A stretch of DNA of 64,000 nucleotides from Rhodosorus marinus CCMP1338. Its lineage: Eukaryota; Plantae; Rhodophyta. The stretch covers positions 186,001-250,000 of the forward strand of contig JAMWBK010000002.1 of the NCBI GenBank assembly GCA_029953675.1, read 5' to 3'. Numbering within the stretch: the stretch's first letter is position 1; every line of letters starts with the position of its first letter. Under the pieces are notes generated by a model. That model saw only the letters and a list, made by a program, of their open reading frames with translations. It ran no database searches and was not told the origin of the DNA. A program made the position numbers and the translations under genes. Of the stretch, positions 1 through 36,487 are shown in pieces.

Positions 1-40
1 GAAACCGTTTGTACACGTTGGGAAGAGTTTGCCCAGAGGG

Positions 41-3068: not shown

Positions 3069-4682
3069 TGAGAACCTCCCTTGACAGCTGTGTAATCCGT
3101 CTATGTTTTAGTGTCAGGCACCTACTTTTAGTGTCAGACGTCAATGTTTAAGTATCCACCAGTTTCTACTTTACTGTCAGGTATGTTTTAGTTTACAGTA
3201 GCCAAGACCATATAAGGCCTAGCTTTTCTAGATCTTGAGACCTAGAATTGAGTAAAAGACAAGTTGGTCCGAAGAGTTCCAACAAAGTGGCCTCATCGCC
3301 TAAAAGGCGAAAGGAGTATTAAGGGAAGGAAAGGGAGAGAACCAGGAGCCGACTTCACAATGGCAACATTTGCGATTCCTCAGCGCGAACCATACGGCGG
3401 GCGACGGGACTTTGCAAAGGTTCAAACGTTTTTGGCGGCGCTCCAAGGTTATTTACAGTTCCTCGACGTTGACGACGCAGGGCGCCAGACGGTCCGGTAC
3501 GCGGGTTTCTTCCTCAAAGACCATGGTTTGCCAACGACCTTGCACGCTTCATCGACTACCTCGATGAACTCTTCATGCAGCTCGGAGAGCACATCAACGA
3601 TTCCGAAAAGCTCGGAATACTCAAGGCGGGCTTAACCAGGCGGGAACGTGATTTCGTGTATTACAGCCGCCCCCAAAGCTAAATTGAGGCCAAGCAGACT
3701 GGACTCAGCATATCCGGGGCGCCCGCGGTTCCTGAAACGACAATGCCGCAGAAAACCGTACAATCCGAACCTGCAACTCACGCACCTCCTTCAATACAAC
3801 CGCCACGACCGCACACGCGAAGTATGGGGCCGCTGAAACCTCTCATATGCTACAGGTGCCAAGAGGAGGGGCACGTCAAGAAGGACTGCTCTCAGCGAGT
3901 GGCCTATCTTCTGGCAGAGGTGGAGAGACTACCTCGCATTCAGGAAAACTGAGGGACTCCGGACGAGGGATGCCGTCCGTGAGTCAGGCTCGCAGCATCC
4001 CACCATGCGTTGCGCTGGAGCGGAAAGACACCGGACTCCTCGCGACAAGTCACGAAACACGCGGAGGAAAAGATCGCGGAGGAGCTTACCGACAAATGTA
4101 AGATGGGGTTCAGAACCCTCCGTGAAGGATCTGAAGGAGAAAAAGCGTGCACCGACGAAGGCGAACCGGGTTCGATGCCACCCTACAAAAGGATTCTGAC
4201 AATGAAGCGAAGGCAGGTACCGACGAAGGCGAACCAGGGTTCGGTAATGCCCTTCCCAAATAATCTATCAAAATGAAAGAAACCACCGACGACAGCGAAC
4301 CGGGGTTCGGTAGTCCGAAAAGATTTTCCCGAGATGACCGAGGTGTTCCGAGACAATTTTTACCAGACAACAGGGACAAACATGACCGACTACCACCGGA
4401 TAAAGAGACTTCGATCCGCTGCGCTACTTTCTTGAGTCTGTGCCCAAACTTGGCGGGAGGAATTTGAGAACCTCCCCTGACAGCTGTATAATCCGTCTAT
4501 GTTTTAGTGTCTGGCACCTACTTTTAGTGCATACGTCAATGTTTAAGTATCCACCAGTTTCTACTTTACTGTCAGGTAGGTTTTAGTTTAACGTCAGGCT
4601 ATGCTAGTAAAGTCCAGTTTAGTCCACTTTAACGTAACCAAGACTATATACGGCCTAGCTTTGCTAGATCTTGAGACCTAAA
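3069..4682 (+). mobile_element. Ty3/gypsy-like LTR element carrying only a decayed gag (no pol seen)
   Basis: Direct repeats at 3069-3284 (tgagaac...ccaaca) and 4465-4682. PBS-like aagTGGCCTC at 3285; purine tract ggcgggagga just before the 3' LTR. Gag-like MATFAIPQREPYGGRRD..VQTFL..LQGYL from 3359 and CCHC knuckle CYRCQEEGHVKKDC at ~3848-3890, frameshifted. Confidence 0.75.
4595..4627 (+). mobile_element. 33-bp 3'-terminal insertion of CRE family A inside the 3' LTR
   Basis: caggctatgctagtaaagtccagt matches the 3' end of the element at 31043-31063 (minus strand). It is flanked by tttaacgt at 4587-4594 and 4628-4635, and is absent from sister LTRs at 3069 and 4683. Confidence 0.85.
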
Positions 4683-8462: not shown

Positions 8463-8479
8463 GATCAAAGGAGGTGGTT

Positions 8480-9490: not shown

Positions 9491-9741
9491 GCACTAGCAC
9501 ATCGCTTGGTACCCCTGATCATTGAGTGCTTTGGGTTCATGGACTCTGTTGGTTCTCGCTGGCTTCGGGAGTTGTTCCGCGAACGCCCTGACCGTCTTCA
9601 ATCGTTGTTTACCCGCTTAAGCTTCCTGCTGTGGCGCATGAATGCCGCTTTGATGTTGGAGGCGCGAGTACTTCGCCGCGCTTAGTCTTTTTTTCCCCTC
9701 GGGGTTTTTTTTTTTCAGCCTCCGATTAAACCATTCGTTCG
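9491..9741 (+). mobile_element. CRE family B 5'-truncated copy
   Basis: Near-identical to 8215-8462, including the tail. Confidence 0.9.
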
Positions 9742-9744
9742 AAT

Positions 9745-9839: not shown

Positions 9840-10751
9840 AGGAAGTGTTTACATCATTTTTTTAACGCCTCAGGTTTGCGTTCGGCTTGGGCAGAAGGCC
9901 GATTTGCCCTTCGAATAACGTTTTTTGTCAATAGAACGGCCCACTCCAATCCGCGGTGGAAGTGTTCTAATCAAGAGAGTAAGCCACCACAATGAAGTAG
10001 CAGGTAAGCGCTTCGGCGCTTCAGCGCTTGTCTTCCACTTGGCTTTATTAGCATATAGCCTAGATGTCTGCTTTTTTGTTCTGGTAGTGGAGGAACGGCA
10101 GTTGTTGAAACATCTGCCGTTCCTCCACAACGAAGTGCTCCTTGCGAAACTATGATTCCTCGACTGTAACACTGCCTGCGCTTCCTAGATTCATGGGAGT
10201 AAAAGTTTTGCAATCTTCAGGGATGTCTGGTTGTAGGATAGGTTCCTCCAACCCACCATGGTAGTTAGACCTTGAATTTTGATTTGGAACAGGCCGGGAG
10301 GGGGTTTAAGTTTGTGCTTGAATGTGTGCCTTTCATCTGGAGCGAGAGTGGCTTCTGGGAACAGAAGAATTCGGATGGAGGTGTGGTAAGTGCGAACAAG
10401 ATCAAATATCATTTGATCTGCACGTACCCCAGCCTATCCGCTCCCGGGTTGCAGTCAGAAGCTTTTGGAGGGCACACAGTGCTCACCGGGAATTATTACT
10501 AGTTTTGCTATGTCTGCATACGTATATATATGTATACTACTTGGAGACATCAGCCCTGATCTCTCTTCGAAAGTAGATAGCGCAAAGTGGTGGATACGAC
10601 TGTCCTGAGCGTCTCGGTGAACGTGGTAAATATTGTGAAGTCGCTTGTGCAGGTTGGGGAGGGCTTGTGAAGAGAGGGTGGACGTCAAAGAGGCGCGTGT
10701 TCTGTGTCGTTCGATGCTACGGGTGCTAGTTTCGGTGTTTTGAAGGAAAAG

Positions 10752-14079: not shown

Positions 14080-14286
14080 TTGTTCATGGACTCTGTTGGT
14101 TCTCGCTGGCTTCGGGAGTTGTTCCGCGAACGCCCTGACCGTCTTCAATCGTTGTTTACCCGCTTAAGTTTCCTGCTGTGGCGCATGAATGCCGCTTTGA
14201 TGTTGGAGGCGTGAGTACTTCGCCGCGCTTAGTCTTTTTTTCCCCTCGGGGTTTTTTTTTCAGCCTCCGATTAAACCATTCGTTCG
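14080..14286 (+). mobile_element. CRE family B 5'-truncated copy
   Basis: Near-identical to the B 3' end; tail aaaccattcgttcg. Confidence 0.9.
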
Positions 14287-14379
14287 GTATCTGCCGAGAT
14301 ACAGAAAATGCTCCGCCCTGTCTCGGAGAACTTGCCCGCAGATTGTCCGCCTTCCCTCACCCGCGCCGTCACATGGGAC

Positions 14380-16740
14380 GGACTCCTGTTCTAAGGGGGA
14401 GAAACACGATTAGCTTCCCGAGCACGGCTGCGAGGTCACAGCCAATGGACCTGCAGTCTTATGTCCTGAAGGAGGGCGGGACTGGGGCATCTGGCGCACG
14501 CGCCTGCGGAGTTGGCTCCGGCGATGGATTTCTTTGGGAGGAGGCTCCCTACCCCTCCGGGGAAGGATTCCGCCTCTTGTATTCCCTCGAGGAGAGCTCT
14601 CCATGGCTGGGACAATCCTGGATTTTATTTTCCAGAGTCTGGCGCGTAATCAACGGGACGTCGCTATGTGGGAATTTTTGGGGGTCATGCCGCGCCTGAT
14701 TCTGGCACCCACTCACACATCGGAGCGCAGATGGCGAGTCCGAGAACGACTGGCCATTCTCCTGAAGGGGGAATTTGAGGTGTTGCAGCAGAGCTACTTG
14801 GCGTCATCCGAGGCATCCGGCCGGAGGACTCGTGCCGGGACAGCCTCGCCTGGGACGACTCGAGTGCAGAAATTGGTGGCGGTTGGCGGCCTGAGCCGAG
14901 CGGCACGGGTCTTGGAGGGTCAGGTGCCTGTACTCCCCTACGACGAGAGCCTCGACCAGACTGTGTCGGCGTTGTTCCCCTCGTCCGACGTGGACTTGCC
15001 CCCCGAAGTCGAGACATTTTTAGACCGTCCAGAGTTGGCGAGGTTCCGCATCGACGTGACGCTCCCTGAGTCTAATCTGGAGGATTTGCTCCGGATCTCC
15101 CGGTGTGGACGCTGCCCTTGACCCTCTGGGCCACGAACGGAATTCCTGCAGGCCTTGAGCAGCCAGAGCGCACTGGTGAAGATCCTGAATCCACGAACGG
15201 AATTACTGCAGGCCTTGAGCAGGGTGCAGGGGGTGCGTCTGCCCCTTGGGACCATCTCCGACGGGCACAGCTTCACTTGCTTACGAAACCCGACCACAAG
15301 CCGGCACACCCGCGTCTCCGGCCGATCGGTGGTCGAGAGTCTACGGAAGCTCGCCGGGAGGTGGCTATTCCAGCGCCTACGCCAGCATGTCCCCGTTTTT
15401 ATGGCGCCTTGGCAGGTAGGGGTGGGATTTTCCGGGGGTTGCGAAATGATCACTCATGCGATCGAGCTCGAGCGAGCCAGTAGGCCGGATTGGGGCGTTT
15501 TGGTGGTTGACTTTCCGTAACGTTTCAACAGCGTCTCGCGGACGCAGTCTTTGGAGGTGATTCGAAGGGTATTCCCGGAGGCGTGGCCGTTCCTATCCGG
15601 CATTTACGGAGGGGAGCCTCCCTTACTTGACAACGTGGGGCTCTGTTTTTGAAGCACGTACGGGCGTTCAGCAGGGTGATCCTTGTGGGCCTGTACTTCA
15701 CGCATATGCCTTGCAGCTCGTGCTCCAGCGACTGGCGGCTGAGGTGCCGGAGCTTCGCATCTGTGCCTACCATGAAGACGTGACGTTGCTGGGCACCCCT
15801 GAGCACTTGGCTCGGGGATTGACCCAGATCGAAGCAATCGCACGTGGAGTAGGTCTAACCGTGGAACCCGAAAAATGCCGTTTTCTTGGCCCGCGTGAAG
15901 TTTCGAGGGGCTCCCCGCCACCTAGTCTCCGAGCCTTTGGTGAAGGTGCGGGGCTCGAGCACCATGGCGTTGGTTTGTGGAGTGACAACTTCGTCCAAGA
16001 CTCTTGCGAACGAGTTTTAGCACGCCATAAGCAGCTCACGACGCCATTGAGCGCCTACCGGACGGCATGCTCCAATCGGCTTGCCTGCTCTCCCGCTTTT
16101 GTGCCGGCCCGAACTGAATTACTGGCAGCGAAATCTTCCACCGCACTGGGGCTCGTGGATAGCAGCCAAGGCGAACGAGGCGACGCTGAAGAACTGGGGA
16201 ACGCTCTTGGATGAGCCCCTGGATGTGGAAGCGGCTCCTGGCAGGGACCTAATTCGTGGCCAGATTGCCCTACCTTTACGGTTAGGGGGATTTGGAGTTT
16301 CCGACCGTGGACTCGTATGCTCGGCTGCGGCGGTCACCTCCTGGGATACCGCGCTTCGCACCTTGGTGAGTTCTCGGATGCGAAGTGCTTGCTTTTGGCG
16401 ATAGCACAGACTAGCGAAGACCGCGTGACCCTTCCGGCACCGCTTTTGAGTATCTACGATGCTCTGCAACAGGCGTTCAGTAAGTGCAACGCCGTGCCGG
16501 ACGAGAGCCGATCCAGATTTCGCTCCTGGAAGGAGCTGTTACGGGGACGAACTGAGGCGCTCGAGGACTCTCCCATCGACGGAGGACTCGCCGACGAGGG
16601 GGAAGCTAGCCCCGGGTCACCGGTTGCCGATTACCCGGGTCTGAGCCGATTGTGGAGCTCGCCCCCACTGATGTGATTCAACATAGCCTCACCTGGGGCC
16701 AACACAGGCCGCTCACGCAATCTTGCTCAACTCTCACCCC
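14380..16740 (+). pseudogene. Large frameshifted CRE family A copy (N-terminal region, RT, thumb; 3' end missing)
   Basis: Fragments MPRLILAP, ESLRKLAGRW, WQVGVGFSGGCE, GVQQGDPCGP, AYHEDVTL, IALPLRLGGFG and IQHSLTWG, colinear with ORF 31091-33919. Confidence 0.9.
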
Positions 16741-19900: not shown

Positions 19901-21481
19901 TGCCTCCGTTTCTGCCTCCGTTTCTGCCTCCGTTTCTGCCTCCGTTTCTGCCTCCGTTTCTGCCTCCGTTTCCGCCGCAGTTTCTGCCGCAGTTTCCGCC
20001 TCCGTTTCCGCCGCAGTTTCTGCCGCAGTTTCCGCCTCCGTTTCTGCCTCCGTTTCAGCCGCAGTTTCAACCGCCGTCTCTGGTACTGTCGGGGATAAAT
20101 TTTCACATAATAACTCCAACTCACAAGTCGTAGGACTTCCTCGTACTCCGGCAGAGCAGGATGTGCCGCTCAAACTGGGAAAGAAATTGAGGTCCCTCAC
20201 ACCGCTCCTGTCCCTAAGAGAGGCAGTTGCTTTCATGAGAACACAAATGTCATCGTTGCAGCATCCGATTCCAGTTGGTCCAAATGCTGATTTAAATTCG
20301 TCGAGGCATACGACGAATGATTCATCGATCACAGGCGGAATGTTCTCAAGAACCCGCTGGTATGGACTGCTTGCGTTCAGCTCATTACAGTTATTACTGG
20401 CTCCAACGCTTATGCTTGTGAACATCCACCGCCTCGAAGCAGCGAAATTATACTCAAGACATCTTTTACCGTCTCGATCCACCAGTGATATGCACACTCT
20501 GCCGGCCCTGATCGGATTGTCGGTATCAGAAAGCATTTTGTAGCACCTTCGGTTGCCCTTAGGAGATACACTAGAGCTAGAGAACTGCGAAACGTGAGTC
20601 AAGCACGTCGGGTTGTCTGCAGAGGAAGGCATCGGTGTCCTGTCTTCAGTATTCATTGCCGTTTCCATCGGCGCTCCCGAGAAACTTGGACCGGGATCTG
20701 GGGTAGCACTCGCCTGCACTGGCTCAGTCTCTAAGCCCGCCGACGCATCTGGTGTCCCCTCGTCTTCCTCCGGCATAGTTTCCGTTGGGATGGGATTCGA
20801 CGTGAATTCGGTCTCCTCAGGAGATGGCAGATGCGTAAGCATATTCAATTCCGTCGCGGTCGTCGTCATCCTCCCCTCGCAGAATAGGTGGCTCTTGCAC
20901 CTCGAAAACTCGGAGATTTCATCAGGAATACAATCCAGGGACCCGAACGCCGGAACCGCCCTGCTGATCTCCGTTTCGCCCGTTCGTCTCACTCTGGCGT
21001 AGGGCACCACACAGATATCCTCGTTGCAGCATCCATTTCCATCAGCCCCTGGCAAAGCTTCAAACTCATCCAAAGCCACCGATGCGCTCCGAGAAGTCCA
21101 CGGTCCACCTACCTTCACGTCTTGGAATCCAGACTCTTCCGAATCACATCTATCATACACCCCACCCCTTATTTCAACGAACTGCCATCCAGGTTCCGCT
21201 ATGTAGTCAAAGCTCACTACCATCGGACCATGAGGATTCTTAATCTGATTACAGATCACACCGACCTTATCGTTGAAGCCTTCGACTAGCAGATCATAAC
21301 ACAGCTCATTAGCTACGTTTCCGATTGATATGCTCTCAAACTGAGTCGTGTAGCTCGAACACGTCCGTTTGTCATCCGATTGTCTCCAGGTGATCGCGTC
21401 CAAGGTTGAATCGGGGCGAGCAATCCCGCAGCAGGCCATGCACGTAAGGAGTAGGACAGGAAGAAGAGTAGATTTGTCCAT
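16991..21481 (-). CDS. Large secreted protein: two Cys-rich domains, ~650-aa Glu/Thr/Ala rod, two vWA domains, 1496 aa
   Basis: ATG 21481 gives signal peptide [21 protein letters not shown]. Two LDEF..GCCN.DIC domains. vWA1 [11 protein letters not shown] (degenerate MIDAS); vWA2 [25 protein letters not shown] (intact DxSxS..T..D). No C-terminal TM segment. Confidence 0.9.
18240..20080 (-). repeat. Coding low-complexity rod (AET/ETEA/TAVET/TAMET units; 12-bp core repeat at ~19560-20080)
   Basis: (gcctccgtttca/t)n on the + strand; graded divergence away from the core. Confidence 0.92.
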
Positions 21482-23889
21482 GGTTTTATCCTTAGGTACC
21501 GACCACACCCGCCTTCTCTCACAATAAGTTGTCAAAGTTTAACAACTCTAGACCTCCACGTTGACCAGGCCATCTCAGAGGTCTCCTCGTCAATGCCCTA
21601 CACACGAGGCAACTGGGAGTTGAAGTCAACCTCAGGCTAGCTTTTGATTCAGCCGTTTTCTTAAATCAATGGGTTTATGTCCAAGGCGCTCCCACGGCGG
21701 ACAAGCAAAACCACAAGTCGATTTTAAAAACCGGTTTGCTCCTAGACTATCTAAAGAGAAATTTCCTAGCCGCATAATTCAGACAGCCGCAATTAACAAG
21801 CTTAGTATGCTCGAAAATGAAATGATGAGCTTTCCTCAAAAGCGTGAAAATAGTTGACGAGACTGGAAAAACATGAACGCGCATCAAGAATAGCCAGAAA
21901 TCCCTCAGCGTTGACCCAGAAGTAGTAGAAGCATCAGCAAGCGCATCATTTTGCTGAGTACGATTCACAAGCTTTATGAAGAGCGTCCGATCCCCCCCCC
22001 GCACTCAGCGAGCATCGCTAACAACTCATACAAGAATTCATCGCCTAAACTGGTGATATGAAATTTGTCCTTCAGTCAGAAGGGGGGAGGGATGGGTTTT
22101 GTGGGTTGATCGCAAAACGGGGGTGATGTCAATAGTTTCCCGCGTTAGCAGCCATATAACGTTTTCCACCGGGTCGTGCATTTTGATGATACACTGGGGT
22201 GGATCAATATCTGGTCATCAATAACCGCTGAAATGGGCGTGTTTGCTTTCCTCAGGGCTGCTTCTGGGGTCGATCACAGATCCTGTATCAAGTGAGCAGA
22301 ACGGGAATCGTACGTTGTTGCTCCACATCGGACCCCGAACGGCGGTAAGGCGCGTCAATGAATTGTTGCGTTAATTCTTGAATGAAAGAAGATCTAGAAC
22401 TTAGCTCACAAAGAGTTGGGGCTTTTACCTAGAGCTGCTGAAGTGTCTCTTAGTCTCGTGCTACGGTCGTTATCTACCGAGTAAATGCAGCCGCCGGGTG
22501 ACCATCCTGGCTAACAAAATGTCAAACAAATTGACCCCGTTATATGCACGTGACTACCGCCACTCATCACCAAGCCGGCCTGAACCCCCACACATGTTTG
22601 TTATCCACAATCTCCATGCTCCGATTTCTCCTTGGGTTTTGCAAAGGGCTGGATACACTGCCAAATGTATGTACTTCCATTAGATTCTTTATTTATAAAT
22701 ACATTCAAGGAATACGGGTTTTTCTCACTACCCCTCTGAATTTTTGATCGCTCTAGTTACAACTACAGCGCTTGCTACCTCTTCCCACCTAAAAACTACT
22801 TACAAACGGATATCCCCCAGAACAGAAGCGGTATTGATTTTAGCGTAAAATGAAAAGTGATAATAGTTTGTGCTCAAAATCAAAGTTTCCCGATTTTCAA
22901 CTCCTACCGTGTCCGGGCCTTAGAATTCACTAGTGGTTAGGAAATCTTAGGAAGTACATTCTTGCTTGGCTTAATCTTTTACCAATTTTGTTTTTTTTAG
23001 AAGGCAGTTCTCTTGGATGGTGCAACTTGGACTACCCTTTGCCAAAGCTCTACGACTTCCAAAGTGACACAAAATACGAGTGAGGGGTCGGAGGATTTTT
23101 TTCAGAGCTCTAGAATAATTCACATTTTGGAGTGGATTTGATCGAAAAAAAATTGAACATATTCACTTTGGGGCTCTTTTCCTTTTTGTTTCCCCCCCAA
23201 AGAAAAGACAGTTGAAAGATGAAGGAATTCTCCATCTTATTGGCTTTATTAGCAAAATCCATCTTATTCACTTCAACTCACCACTTCTTTTCCGGTCCTA
23301 GTTTTAATAATAAAGGGGACCACAAAAAGTGTTGGGATTTCTCCGCAAGTGATGAATAATTTTCAATTGAACAAACGAAGAATTAGTTCAGGTTGGTCGA
23401 ACGGTGAGTTTTTTTAAGAAAAGGACTTGTGGAATTGGAAAAAGGGGGGAACCACCAGCTGTTGGTCGAATAACTCCAGAGTCTTCCAATACCGGGGGAG
23501 CGAGAGGGGGTAAGGGCTGGCAGGTGAGAGTCAAAAAGAGACAAAGAAGCTGGGGGAGAGAGCTTTGCCAGCAGCCCGGTGGATTAGAAGATTTGGGATT
23601 GGCAGGGGCTACTGTTCAGGGGTTTACAGATCTATGAAATTGGAATCGTATAGCTTGGTTCTGTGTAGATTTTCCATCGGCGCTTTGCGCTTCAGCGATG
23701 AAACGACTTCAGCCAGCGTTCTGTAACATGCTCGCAGGAAAAGACAGAATTGCCGGAACATGAGCGTTAACGCGCGATCGGATTGGAATCATCCAGTCTC
23801 TGTGGAAAGTAGCCAAGTGCCTCCGCTCGACACACCAGCCTCCAGAAAAAAAAACAAGGGGTGTTTGTCTGGAACTTGGTGGTGGTGGT

Positions 23890-24260: not shown

Positions 24261-24615
24261 CCTTTCCCCTGTACAAAAAAAACACGAGATACTTAAACTC
24301 ACCGCAGAGTATGATATGCGCTCCTGAACAGGCGAACCCATCGTTTTCCTGGAGCAAAAGCTGTTCATCCGTTTTCCATCAACGAGCGAAGCGAACGCTC
24401 TACGCGGGACACAGTGACCTGTGGGTGACCCGGCTTCAGAGGTGTGGATCACCATCCAATTCCCACTTACAACACAACAGAGTAGAATCCTATGATTCTG
24501 AGCATTTCCACGGAGGAATCAGGTTCGATATTGACGTCCATCGCTTTATCGATGAACGCCAAAAATTCCCTGGCATTGCGACAAGTCTATCCGCGCAGTC
24601 CTTCTAGTTTATCGA

Positions 24616-25441
24616 GGCGTCACACTCGCTTCAAGTACATTCTCAGCGAATATTTGACTCGAGTAGGGCATGCGGTTGAGGTGGAATCGGAACTACCCAG
24701 ATCGGTCTCGGATAGGGCACCGCCCCGCTGTATCGCAGATCTCCTCGTCTCCGATGCTGCCGCCAGACGCTCAGCATATGTTGACCTCGCGACCACATGC
24801 CCTATGGCAAGCGCCCATCTCAGCGGGCTGCCGCCCGCCGCCGGGGAGCAGCGGCTTCGGCCCTTCGCCACGTGAAGGAACGACGGTATGCTGAGAGTAT
24901 GGCCAGCCTCGCGCTGAGGGTCGCTCCCACCGGTTCCAGCCTTTCAGTGTGGAAAGCTTTGGTCACGTGGAGAAGTCGGGTTTGGAGTGGTTGCGGAAAC
25001 GTGTTACTGAGCATCCTGTTGAATACTTGGAACTTTTGCGGCGTTTAAGTGTCTCTCTGTGGCGATATTCGAGTAGCATGCTTCCCGAGGCGCGCCATCT
25101 GCGCCTGGGTTTGCACGCTTCCCTACCTAGTTCTTAGTTCCTTTTCACGCCTTACGTAGCGCTTTACGCGGGGGCTTTGTCTTCCCCTGGTGTTCGTGCT
25201 TCGGCACTAGCACATCGCTTGGTACCCCTGATCATTGAGTGCTTTGGGTTCATGGACTCTGTTGGTTCTCGCTGGCTTCGGGAGTTGTTCCGCGAACGCC
25301 CTGACCGTCTTCAATCGTTGTTTACCCGCTTAAGTTTCCTGCTGTGGCGCATGAATGCCGCTTTGATGTTGGAGGCGCGAGTACTTCGCGGTTAGGCAAA
25401 CCATTCATTCACGTAGCGCTTCAGGCTATGCTAATAAAGCC
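24616..25441 (+). mobile_element. CRE family A 5'-truncated copy, interrupted by a family B insertion
   Basis: RRHTRFKYILSE..ADLLVSD..YVDLATTCP..KERRYAES..GLHASLPSS*, then UTR. Flanking agtttatcga (24606-24615) and agtatatcga (25442-25451). Confidence 0.88.
25165..25410 (+). mobile_element. CRE family B copy nested in the family A 3' UTR
   Basis: Perfect 11-bp TSD acgtagcgctt at 25154-25164 and 25411-25421; cattcattc tail. Confidence 0.92.
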
Positions 25442-25619
25442 AGTATATCGAAGAAAATTCTGGAGTAATGTTGCACATCACCTGTGAGAAGGGAGGTAGA
25501 AACCTAGTAAGAGAATTAAAGAAAGTCTAGTTTTTCACTTTGCCCTGCGCAAGCTTCAGGCTATGCATCCATCCAGTAACAGAATTTCCGCAGAGGAATC
25601 AGGACCTTGCTGCTCGCAG

Positions 25620-28843: not shown

Positions 28844-29858
28844 ATGGCGTTTGTATCGAGTATAACTGGAGTTAGAGTGAGTACGCGTGGATCTACAAGA
28901 AGTGGTAAGGATACAACAGCTTGCCTGCTTCCATCCCTAGTCTTGTTCTTATGCCGTATGTTTGTTGTTGTTTGCAATAGCTTTCAATGGAACTGAAAGA
29001 ACAGCCGCCGCCCCTGCACCTCGTGCAAGGATCGTGATGGGAGTTGGAAACCAGTCCCTAGTTGATTTGGGTCTGGACAAGTTCATGGACAAGCCGAGGG
29101 TGACGGATGACAAGAGCAAGTCTGCGATTGTGAATGAGGTCTACAAGATGGTGTTCGCCAATGCCTACATCATGGACTCTGAGAAGGCTGAGATGAACAA
29201 GGCCGAGTCTATGTTCCTGAACGGGGACCTGACAGTGAAGCAATTCGTCATGGCCCTGGCAATGACTGAACAATATAAGAAGAGGTTCTTCGACAACCGT
29301 CCAGTCTGTGGAGCGGTGGAGATGAACTACAAGCATTTCCTTGGACGCACCCCGGACGGTCTTGCAGACTACCAAACCAAGACCTACAAGTACGACAACA
29401 ACGGATACGCAGCATTTGTCTCGTCGTTCTTCGAAGACGGCGAATACGACCGTGTCTTCGGTGATTGGGGAGTTCCGTACTATAGAGGTTACAAGAGCGA
29501 GGCGAACCTGTCCATGACCTCATTTACCCACTTCTTCCAAGTTCGTCGCCTTTTGCAGATCCTCGCAACTAGCTTCGACAATGGTACCGATGGGTTAGTA
29601 ACTGAATCGTGTATTCTCTTCTCTCCCATAATGCAGGTTGTCCGTGGAGGCTCCACATCAGACAAGGGCATGGTGAACAACTTGATCCCGCTGAACAAGA
29701 ACGGTCTAAAGTCAGTTCCAATTCCTGTCAAGCCTCTGGCTGGAGGGGCGTCGTCCTCAGTCCCAGGAGCTGATATGATAACTACCGTAGTTAGTGGATT
29801 GATTATAATTGCTATAGCGTTCCTGGTCATAGCCAATGGCAGCACGCCAACCTCGTAG
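28844..29858 (+). CDS. Nuclear-encoded phycobilisome linker (PF00427-type, CpcG/CpcL-like) with transit peptide and C-terminal hydrophobic helix; exons 28844-28904, 28981-29540, 29637-29858
   Basis: Spliced N-terminus MAFVSSITGVRVSTRGSTRS-AFNGT..RIVM. Linker core AESMFLNGDLTVKQFV..YKKRF..VEMNYKHFLGR.P..EY..FGDWGVPYYRG..FTHFFQ-VVRG..TSD. GT-AG introns 28905-28980 and 29541-29636 restore the frame and the motif. Confidence 0.92.
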
Positions 29859-30135: not shown

Positions 30136-31090
30136 TCCCCAAACCTGACTGTCCACCTCTTTCAGCGAGCTTCGCTTGTCCTCCAGTGCCCGTGCAAATG
30201 GGCCCACTTGTCCATTTTGAGGATCATTCCCGAGTCTTCTTATTGCTGAAAAGGAGCGAAGCAACACCGTACTCGGATGAGTTCAGAGCTACGAATTCGA
30301 ATAGGGGCGTTTGTGCCTTGCTGTATTCCGCAATCCTTGCGAGCCGCGGAGAAGTCCAAACACGAGTTTCTAATTAACGAAAATTGAGCTAAATGTAAGA
30401 TATTTTGGCAGAAAAGTTCATAATTTATTCTCTGCTCAGCATATTAGAATATATATATTTAAAAACATTAGTCGCGAATTATAGCGAGTGGCGTTTGTTT
30501 TAGAAAGCGTTATAAAGGCTGAAAGAGCGATGAAACGCAGCTAAGCACATCGGAACAAGGCGCGGAGATCACGATGATGGTGATGAAGATCATAGTGAAG
30601 GTGGTAATAGGGCACGCCCTATGGGAGTATAGGGCCGGCCCTATCTGCCATATACGTATTGCGGTACTAATTTCAAAGCTCGAATCTGACGTTTTAGCTA
30701 TTGTTTTATCATGCACCCCCCTTGATGAATCGAAGAGCTCTTCGTGTTTAGAGAGCTGAGATGTACTGTGCTTGCTGAAAGCGTTCCTTGATGCAGTCGG
30801 TGGGAACCAGGAGAGTTGGGGTAGAGAGCTTCCCCGGAGAAGTTGGCTGCGGCATCTTTTTCTTGGCGTGCTTATGTTTGGTTTGTGGCTTACCACACCC
30901 GTTAACCACGAGTTGAGACCTTGTTTTTCACCGCTTTCTGATGGTGGGCATCTCCTCTACTCCCACTTTTTGTCTTAGTTTTTCATGCTCTCGGGCTTGT
31001 TGTCTGAAGATACAATGATGAGGTTGATGAGGTTGTATTACTGGACTTTACTAGCATAGCCTGAAGCGCTACGCAAGGCGTGAAGATGAA

Positions 31091-33919
31091 CTAATAACTA
31101 GGGAGGGAAGCATGCAACCCCAGGCGCCGATGGCGCGCCTCGGAAAGCATGTCGCTGGAATATCGCCAAAGGGAGACACTTAAACGCCTCAAGAGCGCCA
31201 AATATTCAGTAGGATGCTCAGCAAAACATTTCCGCAACCACTCTAAACCCGACTTATCCACGTGACCAAAGCTTTCCACAATGAATGGCTCGAACCGGTG
31301 AGACCGACCCTCAGCGCAAGGCAGACTGGCCATGCTCTCAGCATACCGTCGTTCCTTAACTCTTCGAAGGGCTGAAGCCGCGGCCCCCCGGCGGCGGGCG
31401 GCTGCGGTGAGGTGGGCGCTGGCCGCGGGGCAGGTAATCGCAAGGTCCACATATGTTGAGCGTCTGGCAGCAGCGTCGGAGACGAGGAGATCGGCTATAC
31501 AACGGGGCGGTGCAGAGTCCGAGATGGATTTGGGCAGTTCCGACTCAACCTCAACCGTATGCCCTATCCGAGTCAAAAACTCGCTGAGGATGTACTTGAG
31601 GCGAGTGTGACGCCTCGTACGGAGACCTCGCAACAGTCCGCAGGAACCCAGGAAGTGGTAGCCACAAGCGTCAATCCGGCTCTCACATCCCTGACAGAAA
31701 GACGGCCGATTAGAGTGCCACGGAGCCTGTGGCAAACCGAGATAGATCCGTGCGGCAGAACGGAACTGGAAAGCATCGAGACGATGACTCAATGACGACG
31801 GTAGAGTGGTTAACCACAAGTGCGAGAGGTGGCCTCCCATGCCGCGGAGACGAGCGGCAGTGGTAGGCGGCGTGAGAGGAGAATTGAGCATGACTGTGTG
31901 AGCGGCACTGTGTTGGCCCCAGGTGAGGCTATGTTGAATCACATCAGTGCGGGAGCTCCACAATCGGCTCAAACCCGGGTAGTCTGCAACAGGGGACCCG
32001 GGGCTAGCCTCTCCGTCATCGGCAAGAACTCGGTCGAGGGGAGAATCCTCAATCGCTTCAGCTCGTCCCCATAACAGCTCCCTCCAGGAACGAAAGCGGG
32101 ACCGATTTGCGTCCGGCACGGCGTTGCACCTCCTGAACGCGTGTTGAAGACCATCATAAATTGTCAAAAGCGGGGGCGGCAGGGTCACTGGATCCTCGTT
32201 GGTCAAAGCTCGAGCCAAGAGGCAGGCACTTCGCATCTGGAAGGTCACCAACGTTCGCAGCGCGGTAGCCCAGGAGGCAACCGCCGCTGGCGAGCATACC
32301 AGCCCACGGTCTGCGACGCCGAATCCCCCTAATCGCAACGGGAGAGCGATCTGTGCACGAATTAAGTCCCTGTCGGGAGCAGCTTCAAGATCGAGGGGCT
32401 CATCCAAGAGCGTTCCCCAGTGTTGCAGGGTCATTTCGTCGGCTTTAGCCGCGATCCACGAGCCCCAAGCTGGAGGCAGGCTGCGCAACCAGTAGTTGAG
32501 TCTGGGACCGGCACAAAAGCGGGAAAGCAAGCAGGCCGATTGCAGCATGCTGTCGGGTAGGTGCTGAATGGCGTCGGTGAGTTGCTTGTGCCGTGCCAAA
32601 ACTCGCTCGCAGGATGCTTGGACAAAGTTGTCAGTCCCCAATCCGACGCCGTGGTGTTCGAACCCTTCACGTTCGCTAATTAGTCGCAGAGTGGGTGGCA
32701 GAGAGTTCAGCGACACGTCCCTCGCGGGGAGAAAGCGACATTTTTCTGTTTCCACAGTCAAACCGACGCGACGTGCAATCGCTTCGATCGCGGTCAGTCC
32801 CCTAGCCAGGGTGTCAGGGGTGCCCAGCAATGTTACGTCATCGTGGTACGCGCAGATTCGAAGATCCGAGACCTCAGTCGAAAGACGTAAAAGTACGAGC
32901 TGTAGGGCACAGGCATGAAGAAGAGGTCCGCAAGGATCGCCTTGTTGGACGCCAGTATGTGCTTGAAAAACAGTGCCCTCCGTTGTCAAGTAGGGAGGCT
33001 CTCTCCCTCCGTAAATACCCGATAGAAACGGCCACGCCTCCGGAAACACACGTCGGAGCACCTCTAGCGCATGCGTCCGCGACACGCTGTTGAATGCGTT
33101 CCGGAAATCAACCACCAAGACTCCCCACTCCGGCCTGCTGGCTTGTTCTAGCTCGATCCCATGGGTGATCAGTTCGCAACCCCCAGAAAATCCCACCCCT
33201 ACTTGCAAGGGCGCCATAAAAGCTGTGACGCGCTGGCGAAGGCGCTGGCATAGCCACCTCCCGGCCAACTTCCGTAGGCTCTCCACCATCCCGATCGGCC
33301 GGAGACGCGGGTGGGCCGGCTGGTGGTCAGGTTTCGTGAGCAAGCAAAGCTGTGCCTGCCGGAGATGTTCCCATGGCGCAGACGCACCCGATACGCCCTG
33401 GAACAACTTGTTAAGGATCCTCAGAAGCGCGCTCTGGCCAGACTGGCTCAGGGCCTGCAATAGCTCTGTTCTTAGTCCGGAGGGTCCGGGACAGCGTCCC
33501 CGACGCGAGGTACGAAGCAAATCCTCCAGGTCAGACTCACTGAGCGTCAGATCGATGCGAAACCTGGCCAACTCCGGACGGTCCAAGAATACCTCGAATT
33601 CAGGGGACAAATCCACGTCGGACTCAGGGAACAAAGACGACACCGTCTGGGCGAGACTATCACCGTAGGGGAGGACAGGCGCCTGGCCCTCCAAAACCCG
33701 CGCCGCTCGACTTAAATCGCCCACTGCTACCAATTTCTGTACTCGAGCTGGCACGGGCGACACTGTGCCATGCCGAGTCCGACGGGCGGATGGTGTTGAC
33801 GACGCCAAATAGCTCCGCTGTAGGACTTCGAAGTCTCCCTTCAAGAACAGGGCCAGTCGGTCTCGTACTCGCCATCTGCGCTCCGATGTGTGAATGGGGG
33901 CCAGAATCAGGCGCGGCAT
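31091..33919 (-). CDS. CRE-clade RT + restriction-like endonuclease ORF, uninterrupted, 942 aa from the first ATG
   Basis: RT motifs RPIGMVESLRKL, QVGVG..GCE, VDFRNAFNSVSR, GVQQGDPCGP, YHDDV; thumb LPLRLGGFG; CCHC CQGC-X9-H-X4-C; RLE RH..ADLLVSD..YVD..KERRY..FIVESFG. The frame stays open upstream to the junction at 34036. Confidence 0.95.
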   Translation of the reverse strand: MPRLILAPIHTSERRWRVRDRLALFLKGDFEVLQRSYLASSTPSARRTRHGTVSPVPARVQKLVAVGDLSRAARVLEGQAPVLPYGDSLAQTVSSLFPESDVDLSPEFEVFLDRPELARFRIDLTLSESDLEDLLRTSRRGRCPGPSGLRTELLQALSQSGQSALLRILNKLFQGVSGASAPWEHLRQAQLCLLTKPDHQPAHPRLRPIGMVESLRKLAGRWLCQRLRQRVTAFMAPLQVGVGFSGGCELITHGIELEQASRPEWGVLVVDFRNAFNSVSRTHALEVLRRVFPEAWPFLSGIYGGREPPYLTTEGTVFQAHTGVQQGDPCGPLLHACALQLVLLRLSTEVSDLRICAYHDDVTLLGTPDTLARGLTAIEAIARRVGLTVETEKCRFLPARDVSLNSLPPTLRLISEREGFEHHGVGLGTDNFVQASCERVLARHKQLTDAIQHLPDSMLQSACLLSRFCAGPRLNYWLRSLPPAWGSWIAAKADEMTLQHWGTLLDEPLDLEAAPDRDLIRAQIALPLRLGGFGVADRGLVCSPAAVASWATALRTLVTFQMRSACLLARALTNEDPVTLPPPLLTIYDGLQHAFRRCNAVPDANRSRFRSWRELLWGRAEAIEDSPLDRVLADDGEASPGSPVADYPGLSRLWSSRTDVIQHSLTWGQHSAAHTVMLNSPLTPPTTAARLRGMGGHLSHLWLTTLPSSLSHRLDAFQFRSAARIYLGLPQAPWHSNRPSFCQGCESRIDACGYHFLGSCGLLRGLRTRRHTRLKYILSEFLTRIGHTVEVESELPKSISDSAPPRCIADLLVSDAAARRSTYVDLAITCPAASAHLTAAARRRGAAASALRRVKERRYAESMASLPCAEGRSHRFEPFIVESFGHVDKSGLEWLRKCFAEHPTEYLALLRRLSVSLWRYSSDMLSEARHRRLGLHASLPSY

Positions 33920-34036
33920 GACCCCCAGAAAAACCCAAATGACTGTGTCCCGAATGTTGCGAGCCAGGCTCGTGAAGATGAAATCGAGAATGGTTCCAGC
34001 TATTAGAAGGTCTCCACGAGGAAGGACGACTGGGGG

Positions 34037-34042
34037 AAAAAA
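34037..34042 (-). terminator. Pol III oligo-T terminator of tRNA-Cys
   Basis: Minus strand ...GGGCCCT-TTGG-TTTTTT immediately after the discriminator base. Confidence 0.8.
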
Positions 34043-34046
34043 CCAA

Positions 34047-34118
34047 AGGGCCCACCCGGGATTGAACCGGGGACCTGTCGATCTGCAGTCGACCGCTCTA
34101 CCACTGAGCTATAGACCC
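34047..34118 (-). tRNA. tRNA-Cys(GCA), intronless, 72 nt
   Basis: GGGTCTA TA GCTC AGTGGTA GAGC G GTCGA CTGCAGA TCGAC AGGTC CCCGG TTCAATC CCGGG TGGGCCC T: complete cloverleaf, U73 discriminator, A and B boxes, no CCA. Confidence 0.97.
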
Positions 34119-34861
34119 AGTCGTTGTATTACTAGAAGTACGCTATTTTTTGGAGAACACTGACTTTCTACTCCAGTCCTTTGATTCCTCGAATTATTTC
34201 AGGACCTGTCCGATCTCCAAATAGCTTCCTTTTTGATGTACAAAACTTTGAGAAGCGGTTACGGAAGGAGCGCGAAGTATCTCTTCGATTTCTCCCAGCT
34301 TGTCTCTCTCCTCTAAGATCGTGTCCCAGATATCAGGATCAAGATGTGCTGAGGTATCGAACTCATCAACATCTTCTGGTACAGAATTTGTTTTCAGGTC
34401 TTCGTTTCCTGCTTCCGTTCTGGGAGCTGGTGAAACCTTTTTTTTGCCCGGTTCGCATTGAACCTACCTCAAAGTTTCAATCGTGTATGCAGTCGAATGT
34501 TCATCATCATCCGTTTATTCAGAGCCTGAGTACCCTGAGCAAAAGCGAGTCTGCTCAAGCTTTTCGCCGAAGCTCTTCCGGAAGCAGGTGGGACCTCATA
34601 GACTATGTATGCTATTGTGAATTTTAATTTAATAATTAATTATATCGATAGGGCAATGAGTTTTCTTGATAATACCAATGTACTTCAAAAATAGCCTGTT
34701 TTATAAACAAAAACGACACAACCCGAGGGCATGAATTAAAAATATGATGCTACCGCATAGGGCAATGAAATAGTATTAAAAATGGCGCCTATGGCCCGAT
34801 GGAAATAGTTCAGAATCGATGGGTACCCCTCGAGTTTTTTTTCATTATGGCGGTGCCCTAT

Positions 34862-35854
34862 TGGTTCCGCTCGCTCCCGACTCACCGGGGCCGGGTGGCT
34901 GGCAACCCGTGCCGACGAGGAGAGCTTTGGTGAGCTGAGATATTTCTTAGATCAGGAGTTGGGTCATCTTCCGCGGGCCACCCGTGATATCGTTTGGCCC
35001 AAGTGGGCCTACCCCTACGTCTGGGCGGTCTAGGCCTCTGTAACCGAGCTGTTATCCAACCATCGGCCGTGGTTGGGTCTTGGGGCACCGCCGCCCTCCC
35101 GACGTTGAGCGCGTTGGCTGTCTCTAACTTCCGGAATTTGGAGTTCAGTATTTCCAGTGATGATCTACACTCTAGTTTCCCTGAACGTGCCCGTGGTTTG
35201 TTTCTCGAGCTCCAATCGACGATGTCATCCTCTACCAGTCTCCCTGCCGACCTGCACCCACGCCTGGCTGGTTGGCGAGCCGGTTTTTCGCGGGCTCGCG
35301 GCGCACCGACCCGAACAGCTGCCGGTACTATACCTGCCGGGCTTGATCCTGTGGTTGCTGAGGAAACGGAGGTCCCTTGTGATCCTCCTGATGATGGACC
35401 GGGCTCAGGGAGTCGCGTCTCAACACGCACGGATGCGTTGCAAAACTCCCTTTCTTGGGACTTGCACCGTGCTGTCTACGGCCGACTTCTCGCGCAGATG
35501 GTCTCATCTTCCCGAGATCGCGCCCGCGTGCGTAGTCTTGGGGGTGTATCAGCTCTCAGTGGCTCACGAGGGTCCCAGCTTTTCCGCCACTCCACTCACG
35601 GATTTCGAAGGTGCACTTCTCTGCGTTTATACCTCGGCTTGCATCAGCCGTCCTGGCCTCTGTGCTCTCAGAACGAAGATACCCCGGATTCTGGCGCCCA
35701 CCTGCTCGCCAGCTGCCCCGCTGTGAAAGGCGCCCGAACCCGACGACGTACGAAGATCTTGAACCTGTCATACCGCGAACTTCGACCTATCGTACGGCAA
35801 GCCGGTCTTGAAATTGAACATGAAAAGCCCCTGCCTGTCGCAGACTACCAGAAT
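34862..35854 (+). mobile_element. CRE family B internal segment (thumb to start of RLE)
   Basis: AQVGLPLRLGGLG..CPLC-like..HLLASCP..PIVRQAGLEIEHEKPLPVADYQN; homology to the copy at 2395 stops at 35854. Confidence 0.85.
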
Positions 35855-36064
35855 CAGGGGGAGGGGGGGGAATCCAGTTTTGTGTGGTACCCTCTTGAGA
35901 ACTTTACACTTCTTATCACTTTTTGCACTTTATTGTACTTGTTTGCACATTATTGCACTTTTTACACTTCTTACCAGTGGGAGTTGTTTTTTACCCCTCA
36001 TGAGGAGGTTGGGCTGTCCGGTAAATTCTTGACGAGGATAGACTATTGAAGAACAGTATACAAA

Positions 36065-36487
36065 ATTGAATGAATTGGTTTCAATCGGAGGCTGAAAGAA
36101 AAAACCTCGAAAGGAAACAAAAGACTAAGCGCGGCGAAGATCGCGCACCTCCAACATCAAAGCAGCGTTCATACGCCACAGGAAGAAACTTAAACTGATA
36201 AACAACGAGGACAGACGTTCAAGGCGTTCTCGGAACAATTCCCGAAGCCAACGAGAACCAACGGAATCCATAATCCCAACTTGCACTCAATGACCTGAGG
36301 TACCAGGCGATGAGCTGGAGCCGAAGCACGAATGCCTGGGTAAGACAAGGCCTCGCATATTTCAACTCTTTGCGACGTCTCATATTGGCAGCGGCAAATC
36401 CACGGCGCTCTCCCGCAGTCGGCAAATAGCGACTAGCCTGAGGATTAGGAACAGCCAGATCAACGTAAGTCATTCGGCGTCTATCGA
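36065..36487 (-). mobile_element. CRE family B 3' segment in opposite orientation
   Basis: TYVDLAVPNPQASRYLP..MRRRKELKYA..; UTR ttcagcctccgattgaaaccaattcattca. Confidence 0.88.

Follow-up and report, generated by a model that had tools for sequence, protein, structure and literature searches.

Mammalian chimeras of U6 snRNA with L1, and likewise those of U3, 5S, 7SL and Y RNA, carry a sense small RNA and L1 sequence within one target-site duplication (TSD) (PMC4476161, PMC11838501). A comparable arrangement was analysed here in the red alga Rhodosorus marinus (nuclear genome, assembly GCA_029953675.1), in a 64-kb stretch of DNA referred to as the window, where a tRNA-Cys gene adjoins a LINE of a family designated A. 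As in U6/L1, a Pol III small RNA lies 5' in sense orientation, ends in oligo-U and passes directly into a 5'-truncated LINE, and a single TSD with a single endonuclease motif surrounds both parts. The LINE, however, is here an R2-like element of a red alga with a restriction-like endonuclease (RLE) and no poly(A), whereas L1 has an AP-endonuclease, and a complete pre-tRNA is joined to a near-full-length LINE with an intact ORF, whereas the L1 parts of chimeras are usually short.

Chimeric tRNA/LINE-1 insertions with duplications of 9–19 bp are described from 21 primate loci (PMC11838501, a 2025 preprint), and there too tRNA and LINE sequence lie inside one duplication. The primate insertions are mostly antisense tRNA halves attributed to twin priming (PMC11838501), whereas Rhodosorus has a whole sense tRNA with putative leader and trailer, which fits an end-to-end jump. 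Outside mammals, the MGL LINE of Magnaporthe grisea makes chimeric retrogenes (PMC2104539), likewise a case of in vivo template switching in which copies of cellular RNAs are fused to LINE 3' parts, but the LINE type and partner RNAs are different and no tRNA gene is carried. In tRNA-derived SINEs, as in Kojima's bipartite-LINE model (PMC5786205), a tRNA head is followed by LINE 5'-proximal sequence and then by a LINE 3' recognition tail, which is also the order found here. In Rhodosorus, however, a T6 terminator splits head from body, and the element is 3.1 kb long, coding and known from one copy.

According to Bibillo and Eickbush, purified Bombyx R2 RT reportedly jumps between RNAs in vitro, passing end-to-end from the 5' terminus of the first to the 3' terminus of the second, a reaction that is said to need no or minimal homology and often to add a few untemplated nucleotides. 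The enzyme class is the same, and such behaviour fits the gapless join of the U6 end to CCCCC and possibly the GACT at the 5' junction; R2 jumping was, however, demonstrated with purified protein, whereas in Rhodosorus it is the genomic product that points to it. Dictyostelium TRE5 and TRE3 and yeast Ty3 also adjoin tRNA genes, but there the tRNA gene is resident and stands at a fixed distance, not included in the duplication. The Rhodosorus tRNA, in contrast, lies inside the duplication, and other copies of the family are not near tRNAs.

Results

Layout of the locus

Read on the minus strand, the locus consists of AGTAATACAAC, GACT, tRNA-Cys(GCA), TTGGTTTTTT, a 5'-truncated LINE, a 48-nt 3' UTR and a second AGTAATACAAC (Table 1), and the coordinates in the initial annotation were all confirmed. 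One retrotransposition event appears to have placed a sense pre-tRNA-Cys and the 5'-truncated LINE inside a single TSD, a reading supported by the family 3' terminus, the 10–11-bp TSDs found elsewhere, the shared CTTCT/AGT context (the slash marks the cut) and the truncation of the LINE inside its ORF.

Table 1. Features of the tRNA-Cys/LINE insertion and of the family A copies used for comparison (positions within the window).
Feature	Position	Strand	Basis
CTTCT, target context abutting the TSD on its 5' side; putative first-strand nick site CTTCT/AGT	34134..34138	(-)	Motif search
Upstream TSD copy, 11 bp, AGTAATACAAC	34123..34133	(-)	Sequence read, anchored shuffle test
GACT, pre-tRNA 5' leader or untemplated/filler nucleotides at 5' junction	34119..34122	(-)	Sequence read
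tRNA-Cys(GCA), whole	34047..34118	(-)	ARAGORN, Rfam RF00005, sequence read
3' trailer TTGGTTTTTT, TTGG plus T6 Pol III terminator run	34037..34046	(-)	Sequence read
Family A LINE part, 2,994 nt	31043..34036	(-)	Alignment to longer family A copies
Intact ORF from ATG, 942 aa	31091..33919	(-)	ORF translation
Reverse transcriptase domain, residues 244-436 of 981, including AYHDDV	32729..33307	(-)	Pfam RVT_1, E=1.8e-15
C-terminal CCHC knuckle CQGCESRIDACGYHFLGSC and RLE motifs RH..., ADLLV, VDLAI	31388..31702	(-)	Alignment to R2 9nl3_A
3' UTR, 48 nt	31043..31090	(-)	Same terminus in other family A copies
Downstream TSD copy, 11 bp, AGTAATACAAC	31032..31042	(-)	Sequence read
Older copy of family A (frameshifted, 78% identity), keeping 5' UTR and ORF start	14376..16735	(+)	Alignment
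Copies of family A terminus	4595-4615; 25422-25441; 23242-23253(-); 10041-10052(-)		Unrelated flank after each
Family A insertion, 5' edge CTTCT/AGTTTATCGA (24601-24615), 3' edge AGTATATCGA (25442-25451); TSD AGTTTATCGA/AGTATATCGA at 24606/25442	24601..25451	(+)	
12 nt of family A tail GCTAATAAAGCC and four additional T; exact 11-bp duplication AATAAGATGGA (23231/23258)	23231..23268	(-)	
21-nt family A tail; duplication AGTTTAACGT (4585) after GTTTT/	4585..4637	(+)	
TSD of family B fragment, exact, ACGTAGCGCTT	25154/25411		

The target-site duplication

The downstream AGTAATACAAC starts exactly after the 3' terminus of family A, ...AAAG(T)CC, which is defined independently by four further copies whose flanks are unrelated, and no third copy of AGTAATACAAC was found on either strand of the window. 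TSDs of four other family A and B insertions in the window are 10–11 bp long, a range that the focal 11 bp fits. The 8-mer CTTCTAGT (CTTCT/AGT) was found at only two places in the window (128 kb of strand searched), 34131–34138 on the minus and 24601–24608 on the plus strand, and at each it marks the 5' boundary of a family A TSD in element orientation. The suggestion that this context flanks another family A insertion was correct for the site at 24601. The putative nick-site motif and the family-typical length are independent support for a real TSD. The sample for the target motif is small, comprising four family A insertions, one of them without CTTCT/AGT.

Unanchored repeats of 10–12 nt form 16 families in this 3.6 kb, one of them an exact 12-mer, and since they are so common a bare 11-mer repeat is uninformative. 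In an anchored shuffle the match had to start at most 8 positions from the element 3' end, and its partner had to lie somewhere in the 300 nt preceding the 5' junction of the LINE; a match of at least 11 nt then arose in 11 of 20,000 shuffles (p about 5.5e-4). Terminus, TSD length, motif and shuffle together support the view of the initial annotation that the 11-bp repeat is a TSD around both tRNA and LINE.

The abundance of 10–12-nt repeats would suit a resident tRNA-Cys gene, behind whose terminator a truncated family A element landed with no TSD of its own, the 11-mer being coincidental, and some LINEs elsewhere, such as the Dictyostelium TRE elements, do target tRNA-gene flanks. We consider this very unlikely, as the anchored chance is about 5e-4, the rare CTTCT/AGT context sits at the upstream 11-mer, the repeat has the usual TSD length of the family, and TTGGTTTTTT and the 3' flank share neither a duplication nor similarity. 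Moreover, no adjacent tRNA was found by the other family A and B copies in the window or in four relatives from other organisms, which argues that tRNA-gene targeting is not a property of the group. Mis-assembly, by which a tRNA locus was wrongly joined to a LINE copy, is extremely improbable. LINE fragments are nested here in a repeat-rich island, a kind of region prone to mis-assembly, but this would not yield a perfect TSD at the exact family terminus together with the family nick motif, and the 3.48 Mb contig implies long-read support.

Truncation and coding capacity of the LINE

The focal LINE is truncated mid-ORF, since two other copies of family A continue at least 194 nt further 5'; together with the native ATG and ~42 codons, it has lost 70 nt or more of 5' UTR. 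Alignment to the older, frameshifted copy opens at focal codon 1 (14570), with query residues 1–366 aligned to 14570–15676 at 68.5% identity, and recovered the proposed correspondence of PPVVLPRGDL to PPLVFPRGEL. In this copy a conserved MDLQSYV... start at 14446 reads in frame into ...RGRIPPLVFPRGEL, and the sequence at 14376–14569 recurs at 6403–6570. No tRNA was found at the 5' region of the two longer copies. Comparison with the window copies found no family A match upstream of the tRNA-Cys, and this unlike upstream sequence argues against insertion of the tRNA into a longer LINE. Among the comparison insertions, that at 24601..25451 is split by a family B fragment with its own exact 11-bp duplication, and a paralogous empty site for the insertion at 4585 lies at 3160–3260.

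The reading frame is open without a gap from 34036 for 981 codons, to a stop at 31093–31091 on the minus strand, in agreement with a LINE that begins mid-ORF directly after the T6. The 942-aa product matched P0001 (1155 aa) with 33% identity across 97% of the query, and the best solved relatives are R2 proteins (E=1.4e-13). The CCHC/RLE region aligns with residues 989–1086 of 9nl3_A, a weak domain match (i-E 0.78) that rests on motifs, and Pfam found no AP-endonuclease family in the LINE protein. The 942 aa of RT and RLE described earlier are thus still open, with the RLE identified by its motifs. The 3' UTR ends in ...CAGGCTATGCTAGTAAAGTCC without poly(A). Judged by its sequence, family A is an R2-like, RLE-type LINE with a single ORF, for which the CRE clade of the initial annotation is a tentative label.

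The tRNA-Cys unit

The tRNA-Cys is 72 nt long including discriminator U73, has the anticodon GCA (ARAGORN and sequence read), scores 66.5 bits with Rfam RF00005 against a gathering score of 29 and is the sole tRNA that ARAGORN identified in the window. Its A box TAGCTCAGTGG and B box GGTTCAATCC are both intact, and neither CCA nor intron was seen when 34047–34118 was read. No other T run in the insertion is as long as the T6 of the trailer. That a primary Pol III transcript served as template is indicated by the trailer with its U6 end and by the lack of CCA, and the 3' side accordingly agrees with the unprocessed pre-tRNA of the initial annotation. GACT would then be the Pol III leader; at 4 nt it is short for one. 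The acceptor could also have been a 5'-matured, 3'-untrimmed tRNA intermediate with GACT as untemplated filler, a possibility suggested by the four extra nucleotides (TTTT, 23254–23257) at the 5' junction of another family A insertion.

Formation of the chimera

A single target-primed reverse-transcription event by the family A LINE probably copied the LINE RNA and then a 3'-unprocessed pre-tRNA-Cys, most likely by template jump, which is the most economical mechanism for the join. The endonuclease would nick the bottom strand at CTTCT/AGT, and the released 3'-OH would prime cDNA on the 3' end (...AAAGUCC) of the poly(A)-less family A RNA. About 3.0 kb of this RNA would be copied until, ~42 codons into the ORF, a broken 5' end was reached or the template left, whereupon synthesis would move to the 3' end of a nascent tRNA-Cys transcript still with trailer and oligo-U and continue through to its 5' end. 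A top-strand cut 11 bp downstream, followed by second-strand synthesis, would then leave the 11-bp TSD around both parts. A single copy with 78% identity is the basis for a possible 2-nt microhomology (TT) at the jump. A jump of this kind was proposed in the initial annotation; at this one locus the single-event reading of pre-tRNA and LINE is supported, whereas the jump itself is not separable by sequence from RNA–RNA joining or re-copying.

The end DNA would look identical had an RNA ligase or trans-splicing linked the 3' end of pre-tRNA-Cys to a family A RNA truncated at its 5' end before reverse transcription in one pass. Ligation of U6 to L1 RNA ahead of retrotransposition offers a demonstrated precedent (PMC6789731, discussed in PMC11838501), for which a route through RtcB is proposed. 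Prior joining is nevertheless quite unlikely here, and splice-site-like sequence is absent at the junction. RtcB needs a donor with a 2',3'-cyclic phosphate or 3'-phosphate, an end that U6 gains, whereas a nascent Pol III transcript has an oligo-U end with a 3'-OH and does not fit.

It is unlikely, too, that a 5'-truncated family A element already stood behind a tRNA-Cys gene at an older source locus and that a read-through transcript was retrotransposed whole (5' transduction), in which case LINEs with this tRNA head may form a small mobile lineage of their own. The intact ORF and the family recognition 3' end imply a transcript that could be mobilised in cis, and the 5' end, 4 nt ahead of the tRNA, is where a Pol III start would be expected. 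Pol III would, however, have to pass the T6, three T5 runs (33933, 32970 and 31579) and eight T4 runs on the sense strand, and a Pol II start precisely 4 nt ahead of the tRNA would be a coincidence. A second copy is absent from the window, and the origin of the junction is merely pushed back, as the source would still need a chimera-forming event, mid-ORF and gapless after a T run.

Discussion

The joining of cellular RNA by an RT to a copy of its own element is already known, and the Rhodosorus chimera is a clean new example from a new lineage and LINE type. The initial annotation had remarked on the architecture from which SINEs are thought to arise; the order of tRNA head and LINE tail agrees with this, but the T6 terminator between the two weakens the case, and the chimera is not itself a SINE and could at most serve as raw material for one. 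The insertion has as its consequence an additional copy of a tRNA-Cys gene whose internal promoter and terminator are both complete, next to an RT/endonuclease ORF that is intact except for the lack of a promoter.

Structure of the chimeric insertion

The window is nuclear DNA of the unicellular red alga Rhodosorus marinus. A phycobilisome-linker ORF, a DHHC palmitoyltransferase and a MatE transporter are encoded in it, and nested LINE fragments form an island from roughly 2 to 37 kb. The chimera, a pre-tRNA-Cys copy fused to a 5'-truncated LINE of family A, is placed inside this LINE-rich island. Reading of the minus strand gave the order of parts listed in the table and returned the coordinates of the initial annotation without exception.

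Parts of the chimeric insertion in the order of its own strand, followed by other LINE insertions in the window
Feature	Position	Strand	Basis or flanking sequence
Upstream flank ...GCGTACTTCT	5' of first duplication copy	-	direct read
AGTAATACAAC, upstream duplication copy	34133-34123	-	direct read
GACT	34122-34119	-	direct read
tRNA-Cys(GCA), 72 nt	34118-34047	-	ARAGORN and Rfam
Trailer TTGGTTTTTT	34046-34037	-	direct read
LINE open frame starting CCCCCAGTCGTC, 981 codons	34036 to stop 31093-31091	-	direct read
48-nt 3' UTR ending ...CAGGCTATGCTAGTAAAGTCC	last nt 31043	-	direct read
AGTAATACAAC, downstream duplication copy	31042-31032	-	direct read
Downstream flank CTCATCAACC...	3' of second duplication copy	-	direct read
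12-nt family A tail	23242-23253	-	exact 11-bp duplication AATAAGATGGA
Family A copy	24616-25441	+	flanks AGTTTATCGA / AGTATATCGA
21-nt family A tail	4595-4615	+	flank AGTTTAACGT; paralogous unfilled site 3160-3260
Family B fragment splitting family A 3' UTR	25154-25421	+	exact 11-bp duplication ACGTAGCGCTT

The tRNA had been described as complete but lacking CCA. Both ARAGORN and Rfam (66.5 bits) called it, as the sole tRNA in the window, and the sequence itself has the cloverleaf, the A and B boxes, U33, G37 and the U73 discriminator, with no CCA encoded. A single-strand thermodynamic fold of the pre-tRNA segment did not yield the cloverleaf (z = -0.7), which is usual for tRNAs and was given no weight.

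An exact 12-nt direct repeat, TTCATCTTCACG, is also present within the element (31079-31090 and 33971-33982, minus strand), one copy 55 nt from the 5' junction and the other directly past the stop codon. This repeat is probably meaningless: in 3.6 kb, chance alone would give about 0.4 such pairs. The linker ORF (PF00427), also nuclear, lies at 28962-29858 (+), separated from the 3' end of the chimera by only some 1.2 kb. Its protein, read from the first ATG, had no exact match in a protein look-up, and the gene model therefore probably has an upstream exon or another start. Immediately beyond the upstream flank, at 34859-36486 on the plus strand, there is another, diverged RT-bearing element with 29% identity to the focal protein, and the same segment holds an inverted 3' fragment of family B, the second LINE family of the window, at 36065-36486. 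A 1,514-aa ORF at 16991-21535 (-), with a von Willebrand A domain at its C terminus and, internally, a long array of degenerate repeats (18532-20090), adjoins the long family A copy where the latter is truncated at its 3' end (16735). Two paralogous ORFs, 10704-12542 (+) and 29-1339 (+), have about 74% nucleotide identity and no Pfam match; the former contains nearly perfect 60-bp tandem repeats (11374-11885), and the pair may be either host genes or parts of mobile elements.

A single duplication encloses the tRNA and the LINE

A bare 11-nt repeat is unremarkable in 3.6 kb, where 16 repeat families of at least 10 nt occur, including an exact 12-mer. The case for a target-site duplication was therefore built on its position and context. 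AGTAATACAAC is found at no other position in the window, and the duplication begins exactly past the family A 3' terminus, ...GCTA(G/A)TAAAG(T)CC, a terminus beyond which the flanks at 4615, 25441, 23242(-) and 10041(-) are unrelated. AGT comes after the terminus in three copies and belongs to the target, because AAT or AAG follows in other copies. Assigning AGT to the 3' end of the element, which would shorten the duplication to 8 bp, was ruled out by the copies at 23242(-) and 10041(-), which end in ...AAAGCC and then AAT or AAG, and it is countered also by the copy at 5450-5467, with no AGT past its tail. A 14-nt reading of the repeat (TC[C/T]AGTAATACAAC) was ruled out as well, since TCC is part of the element terminus in all copies.

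The 8-mer CTTCTAGT has just two occurrences on both strands of the window, a number close to the chance expectation, and each, read in the orientation of the element, lies at the 5' edge of a duplication flanking family A (34131-34138(-) and 24601-24608(+)). The second of these is the CTTCT/AGT context that the initial annotation had noted at another family A insertion, and GTTTT/AGT is found at a third. A conserved motif at this edge is expected, since the primer strand is nicked there in target-primed reverse transcription. In a shuffle test anchored so that the repeat started no more than 8 positions from the 3' end and matched anywhere in the 300 nt upstream of the LINE 5' junction, 11 of 20,000 shuffles reached 11 nt.

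The terminus, the duplication lengths of the family, the nick context and the shuffle test agree in placing the tRNA inside a genuine single-event insertion, as first proposed, with one duplication and one endonuclease site around both parts, as in chimeric retrocopies. A resident tRNA flanked by a chance repeat is accordingly very improbable. The duplication evidence disfavours it, and no tRNA lies beside the other copies in the window or was found by ARAGORN on the contigs of four relatives, a result on which tRNA adjacency as a general feature of the clade was also rejected. That the junction is an assembly artefact is scarcely credible, as an artefact would not yield a perfect, motif-bearing duplication. 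No paralogous empty site of the focal insertion was found in the window.

Other insertions in the window have features of their own. The family B fragment at 25154-25421 (+) is young and 100% identical to 8175-8399, and its tail is without about 45 nt that other family B 3' ends have (8400-8464, 9680-9742 and 14225-14286). The tail insertion at 4585-4637 (+) has its unfilled counterpart (3160-3260, plus strand) in a nearby duplicated segment of 95% identity, and a 10-nt tandem duplication (GTCCAGTTTA / GTCCACTTTA) at its 3' junction looks like the product of slippage or re-priming there. The minimal retrocopy at 23231-23268 (-) consists of the last 12 nt of family A and four extra T inside a perfect 11-bp duplication. 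It suggests that priming needs no more than a very short stretch of the 3' end, and that untemplated nucleotides are added at 5' junctions, either by the enzyme or by repair.

The LINE partner is R2-like

The 942-aa open frame with RT and restriction-like endonuclease (RLE) domains that had been reported was found as an ATG-initiated ORF, its RLE part being recognized by motifs. The only Pfam match was RVT_1 (E=1.8e-15), a LINE-type reverse transcriptase domain, and the best solved relatives were R2 proteins (E=1.4e-13), with L1 ORF2p behind at about 5e-7. C-terminal to the RT, a CQGC...C..H....C knuckle followed by RH, ADLLV and VDLAI aligns to R2 residues 989-1086. The domain E value is weak (0.78), so the CCHC and PD-(D/E)XK endonuclease order is read from motifs; Pfam detected no AP endonuclease (Exo_endo_phos) in the ORF. 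As is characteristic of RLE-type elements, family A copies from 12 nt to more than 2.3 kb have one common 3' terminus and duplications of 10-11 bp. From the R2 relatives and the C-terminal motifs, the element is classified as a single-ORF R2-like LINE with a motif-based restriction-like endonuclease.

The nearest database proteins are metagenome or red-alga ORFs with at most 34% identity. Closest is P0001, a 1155-aa metagenome protein (33% identity over 97% of the query) that has the same motifs and keeps the C-terminal CCHC/RLE region, and the best named match is from the red alga Pyropia. Exact protein look-up returned no record of the 942-aa ORF and, for the MatE gene, one contig only, in GCA_029953675.1 itself. 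A protein-guided scan of JGI metagenome contigs confirmed no family A relatives, and a literature search on R. marinus retrotransposons found nothing.

The element had been labelled CRE in the initial annotation. Insertion into a fixed multicopy target, such as spliced-leader genes, is the hallmark of the CRE clade (CRE1/2, SLACS, CZAR and relatives). No such target was found for family A, four insertions of which lie in four unrelated sequences with only a short context in common (YTTYT/AGT in 3 of the 4), and Rfam detected no spliced-leader or other RNA gene in the window besides the tRNA-Cys. Family A appears, from its reading frames, to be a single-ORF element that starts at 14446 in the long copy, and tblastn of the ORF1 proteins from two relatives' contigs (L002 and L003) gave no match in the window. 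In the nearest relatives (metagenome, Logan contigs; L002 1-1170 and L003 3-2459) a long low-complexity Pro/Ala/Ser-rich ORF1 is located directly 5' of the RT ORF; none like it was seen in family A of this window.

The tRNA takes the place of the LINE 5' end

An older, frameshifted copy of family A (14570-16735, 78% nucleotide identity) can be aligned from the first codon after the T run and extends at least 194 nt further 5' (14376-14569), through sequence repeated at 6403-6570. Its conserved start, MDLQSYV(L/M)KEGG.DWGIWRTRL.SWL... at 14446, reads in frame into ...RGRIPPLVFPRGEL if one 1-nt deletion in this copy is allowed. The focal copy has therefore lost the 5' UTR together with the native ATG and some 42 codons, and nothing similar to this part is present upstream of the tRNA. 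On this comparison, the tRNA takes the place of the 5' end of the LINE and did not land within a longer one.

The tRNA copy is sense-oriented and the LINE sequence continues without a gap after the last T, so that a sense small-RNA copy is fused to a 5'-truncated LINE with no intervening DNA. The trailer, the complete T6 and the lack of CCA point to a primary Pol III transcript with an untrimmed 3' end as the template. The simplest account is a jump from LINE RNA onto the pre-tRNA. After some 3.0 kb of family A RNA had been reverse-transcribed, the enzyme would have run off this template or abandoned it and resumed synthesis at the pre-tRNA 3' end. Purified R2 enzyme performs such end-to-end jumps in vitro. 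The same step is one of two mechanisms discussed for sense U6/L1 chimeras (PMC11838501). The older copy has ATT before the CC equivalent to the junction, and up to 2 nt of U/A microhomology, as judged from this one diverged copy, may have helped the jump.

Two other routes to the same structure were considered. Ligation of pre-tRNA and LINE RNA before reverse transcription would result in identical DNA, and it is reported to occur for U6/L1 via RtcB (PMC6789731). That route requires a cyclic-phosphate end, which nascent pre-tRNAs normally do not have, and we consider it a distinctly unlikely origin. A transcript read through from an older tRNA-LINE source locus is unlikely too. Pol III would have to pass the T6, three T5 and eight T4 runs, or else a Pol II start would by chance have to fall 4 nt before the tRNA, and a prior chimera-forming event is still required.

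GACT may represent the Pol III leader, in which case transcription would start on a purine 4 nt before the tRNA; filler is just as plausible, since at a comparable junction the 23242(-) insertion carries four extra T. A longer leader, ending CAACGACT, could go unseen if it shared microhomology with CAAC, in which the duplication ends. In eukaryotic pre-tRNAs 5' processing usually precedes 3' trimming, and the 5'-mature, 3'-untrimmed intermediate would therefore be an abundant acceptor.

Comparison with known tRNA-associated elements

In its architecture the locus matches chimeric retrocopies of the U6/L1 type. Primate tRNA/L1 chimeras are mostly antisense tRNA halves attributed to twin priming (PMC11838501), whereas the red-alga locus has a whole pre-tRNA in sense orientation; a fungal LINE, too, has formed chimeras by template switching (PMC2104539). 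In the TRE/Ty3 type the tRNA lies outside the duplication, at a fixed distance and recurrently. Here it lies inside, and at least eight family A and at least seven family B fragments in 64 kb are accompanied by a single tRNA.

A SINE-type architecture had also been suggested. The order of tRNA head and LINE tail holds, and a similar head-body-tail order is found in tRNA-derived SINEs (PMC5786205), but membership among SINEs does not. T6 directly after the tRNA, with more T5 runs downstream, stands in the way of Pol III transcription through to the LINE tail, and rather than being short, non-coding and multicopy the insertion is 3.1 kb long, carries the 942-aa ORF and is present in one copy in the window. 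It is thus set apart from SINEs by the terminator that parts head and body and by being long, coding and of one known copy. An exact scan of JGI metagenome contigs with the tRNA 3' half plus TTTGG gave 0 matches.

Implications

Chimeric retrocopies are the main in vivo evidence for template change by LINE reverse transcriptases. To our knowledge, nearly all of it comes from AP-endonuclease L1 in mammals and from one fungal LINE; for R2-like enzymes, end-to-end jumps are well established in vitro, and we know of little documentation in genomes. With this insertion, the signature is also seen for an R2-like LINE of the restriction-endonuclease type, and in a red alga. New are the enzyme class, the host, the entire pre-tRNA with promoter and terminator, and the near full-length, ORF-intact LINE partner. 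We regard it as a well-supported example, at a single locus and with a mechanism that we infer, rather than as a new principle.

The locus indicates that capture can extend to an entire primary tRNA transcript, internal promoter and terminator included. New tRNA gene copies with the potential to function could arise in this way, as opposed to the dead tRNA halves formed with L1. It also provides a concrete case of the tRNA-head, LINE-body and LINE-tail order of SINE-birth models, in which the terminator in between means that further changes would be needed. It is doubtful that family A LINEs capture nascent Pol III transcripts repeatedly, or that the tRNA-headed, ORF-intact element propagates as a lineage. 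If capture did recur, family A would spread functional tRNA genes complete for promoter and terminator, and a propagating lineage would represent an extant intermediate between LINE and tRNA-derived SINE.
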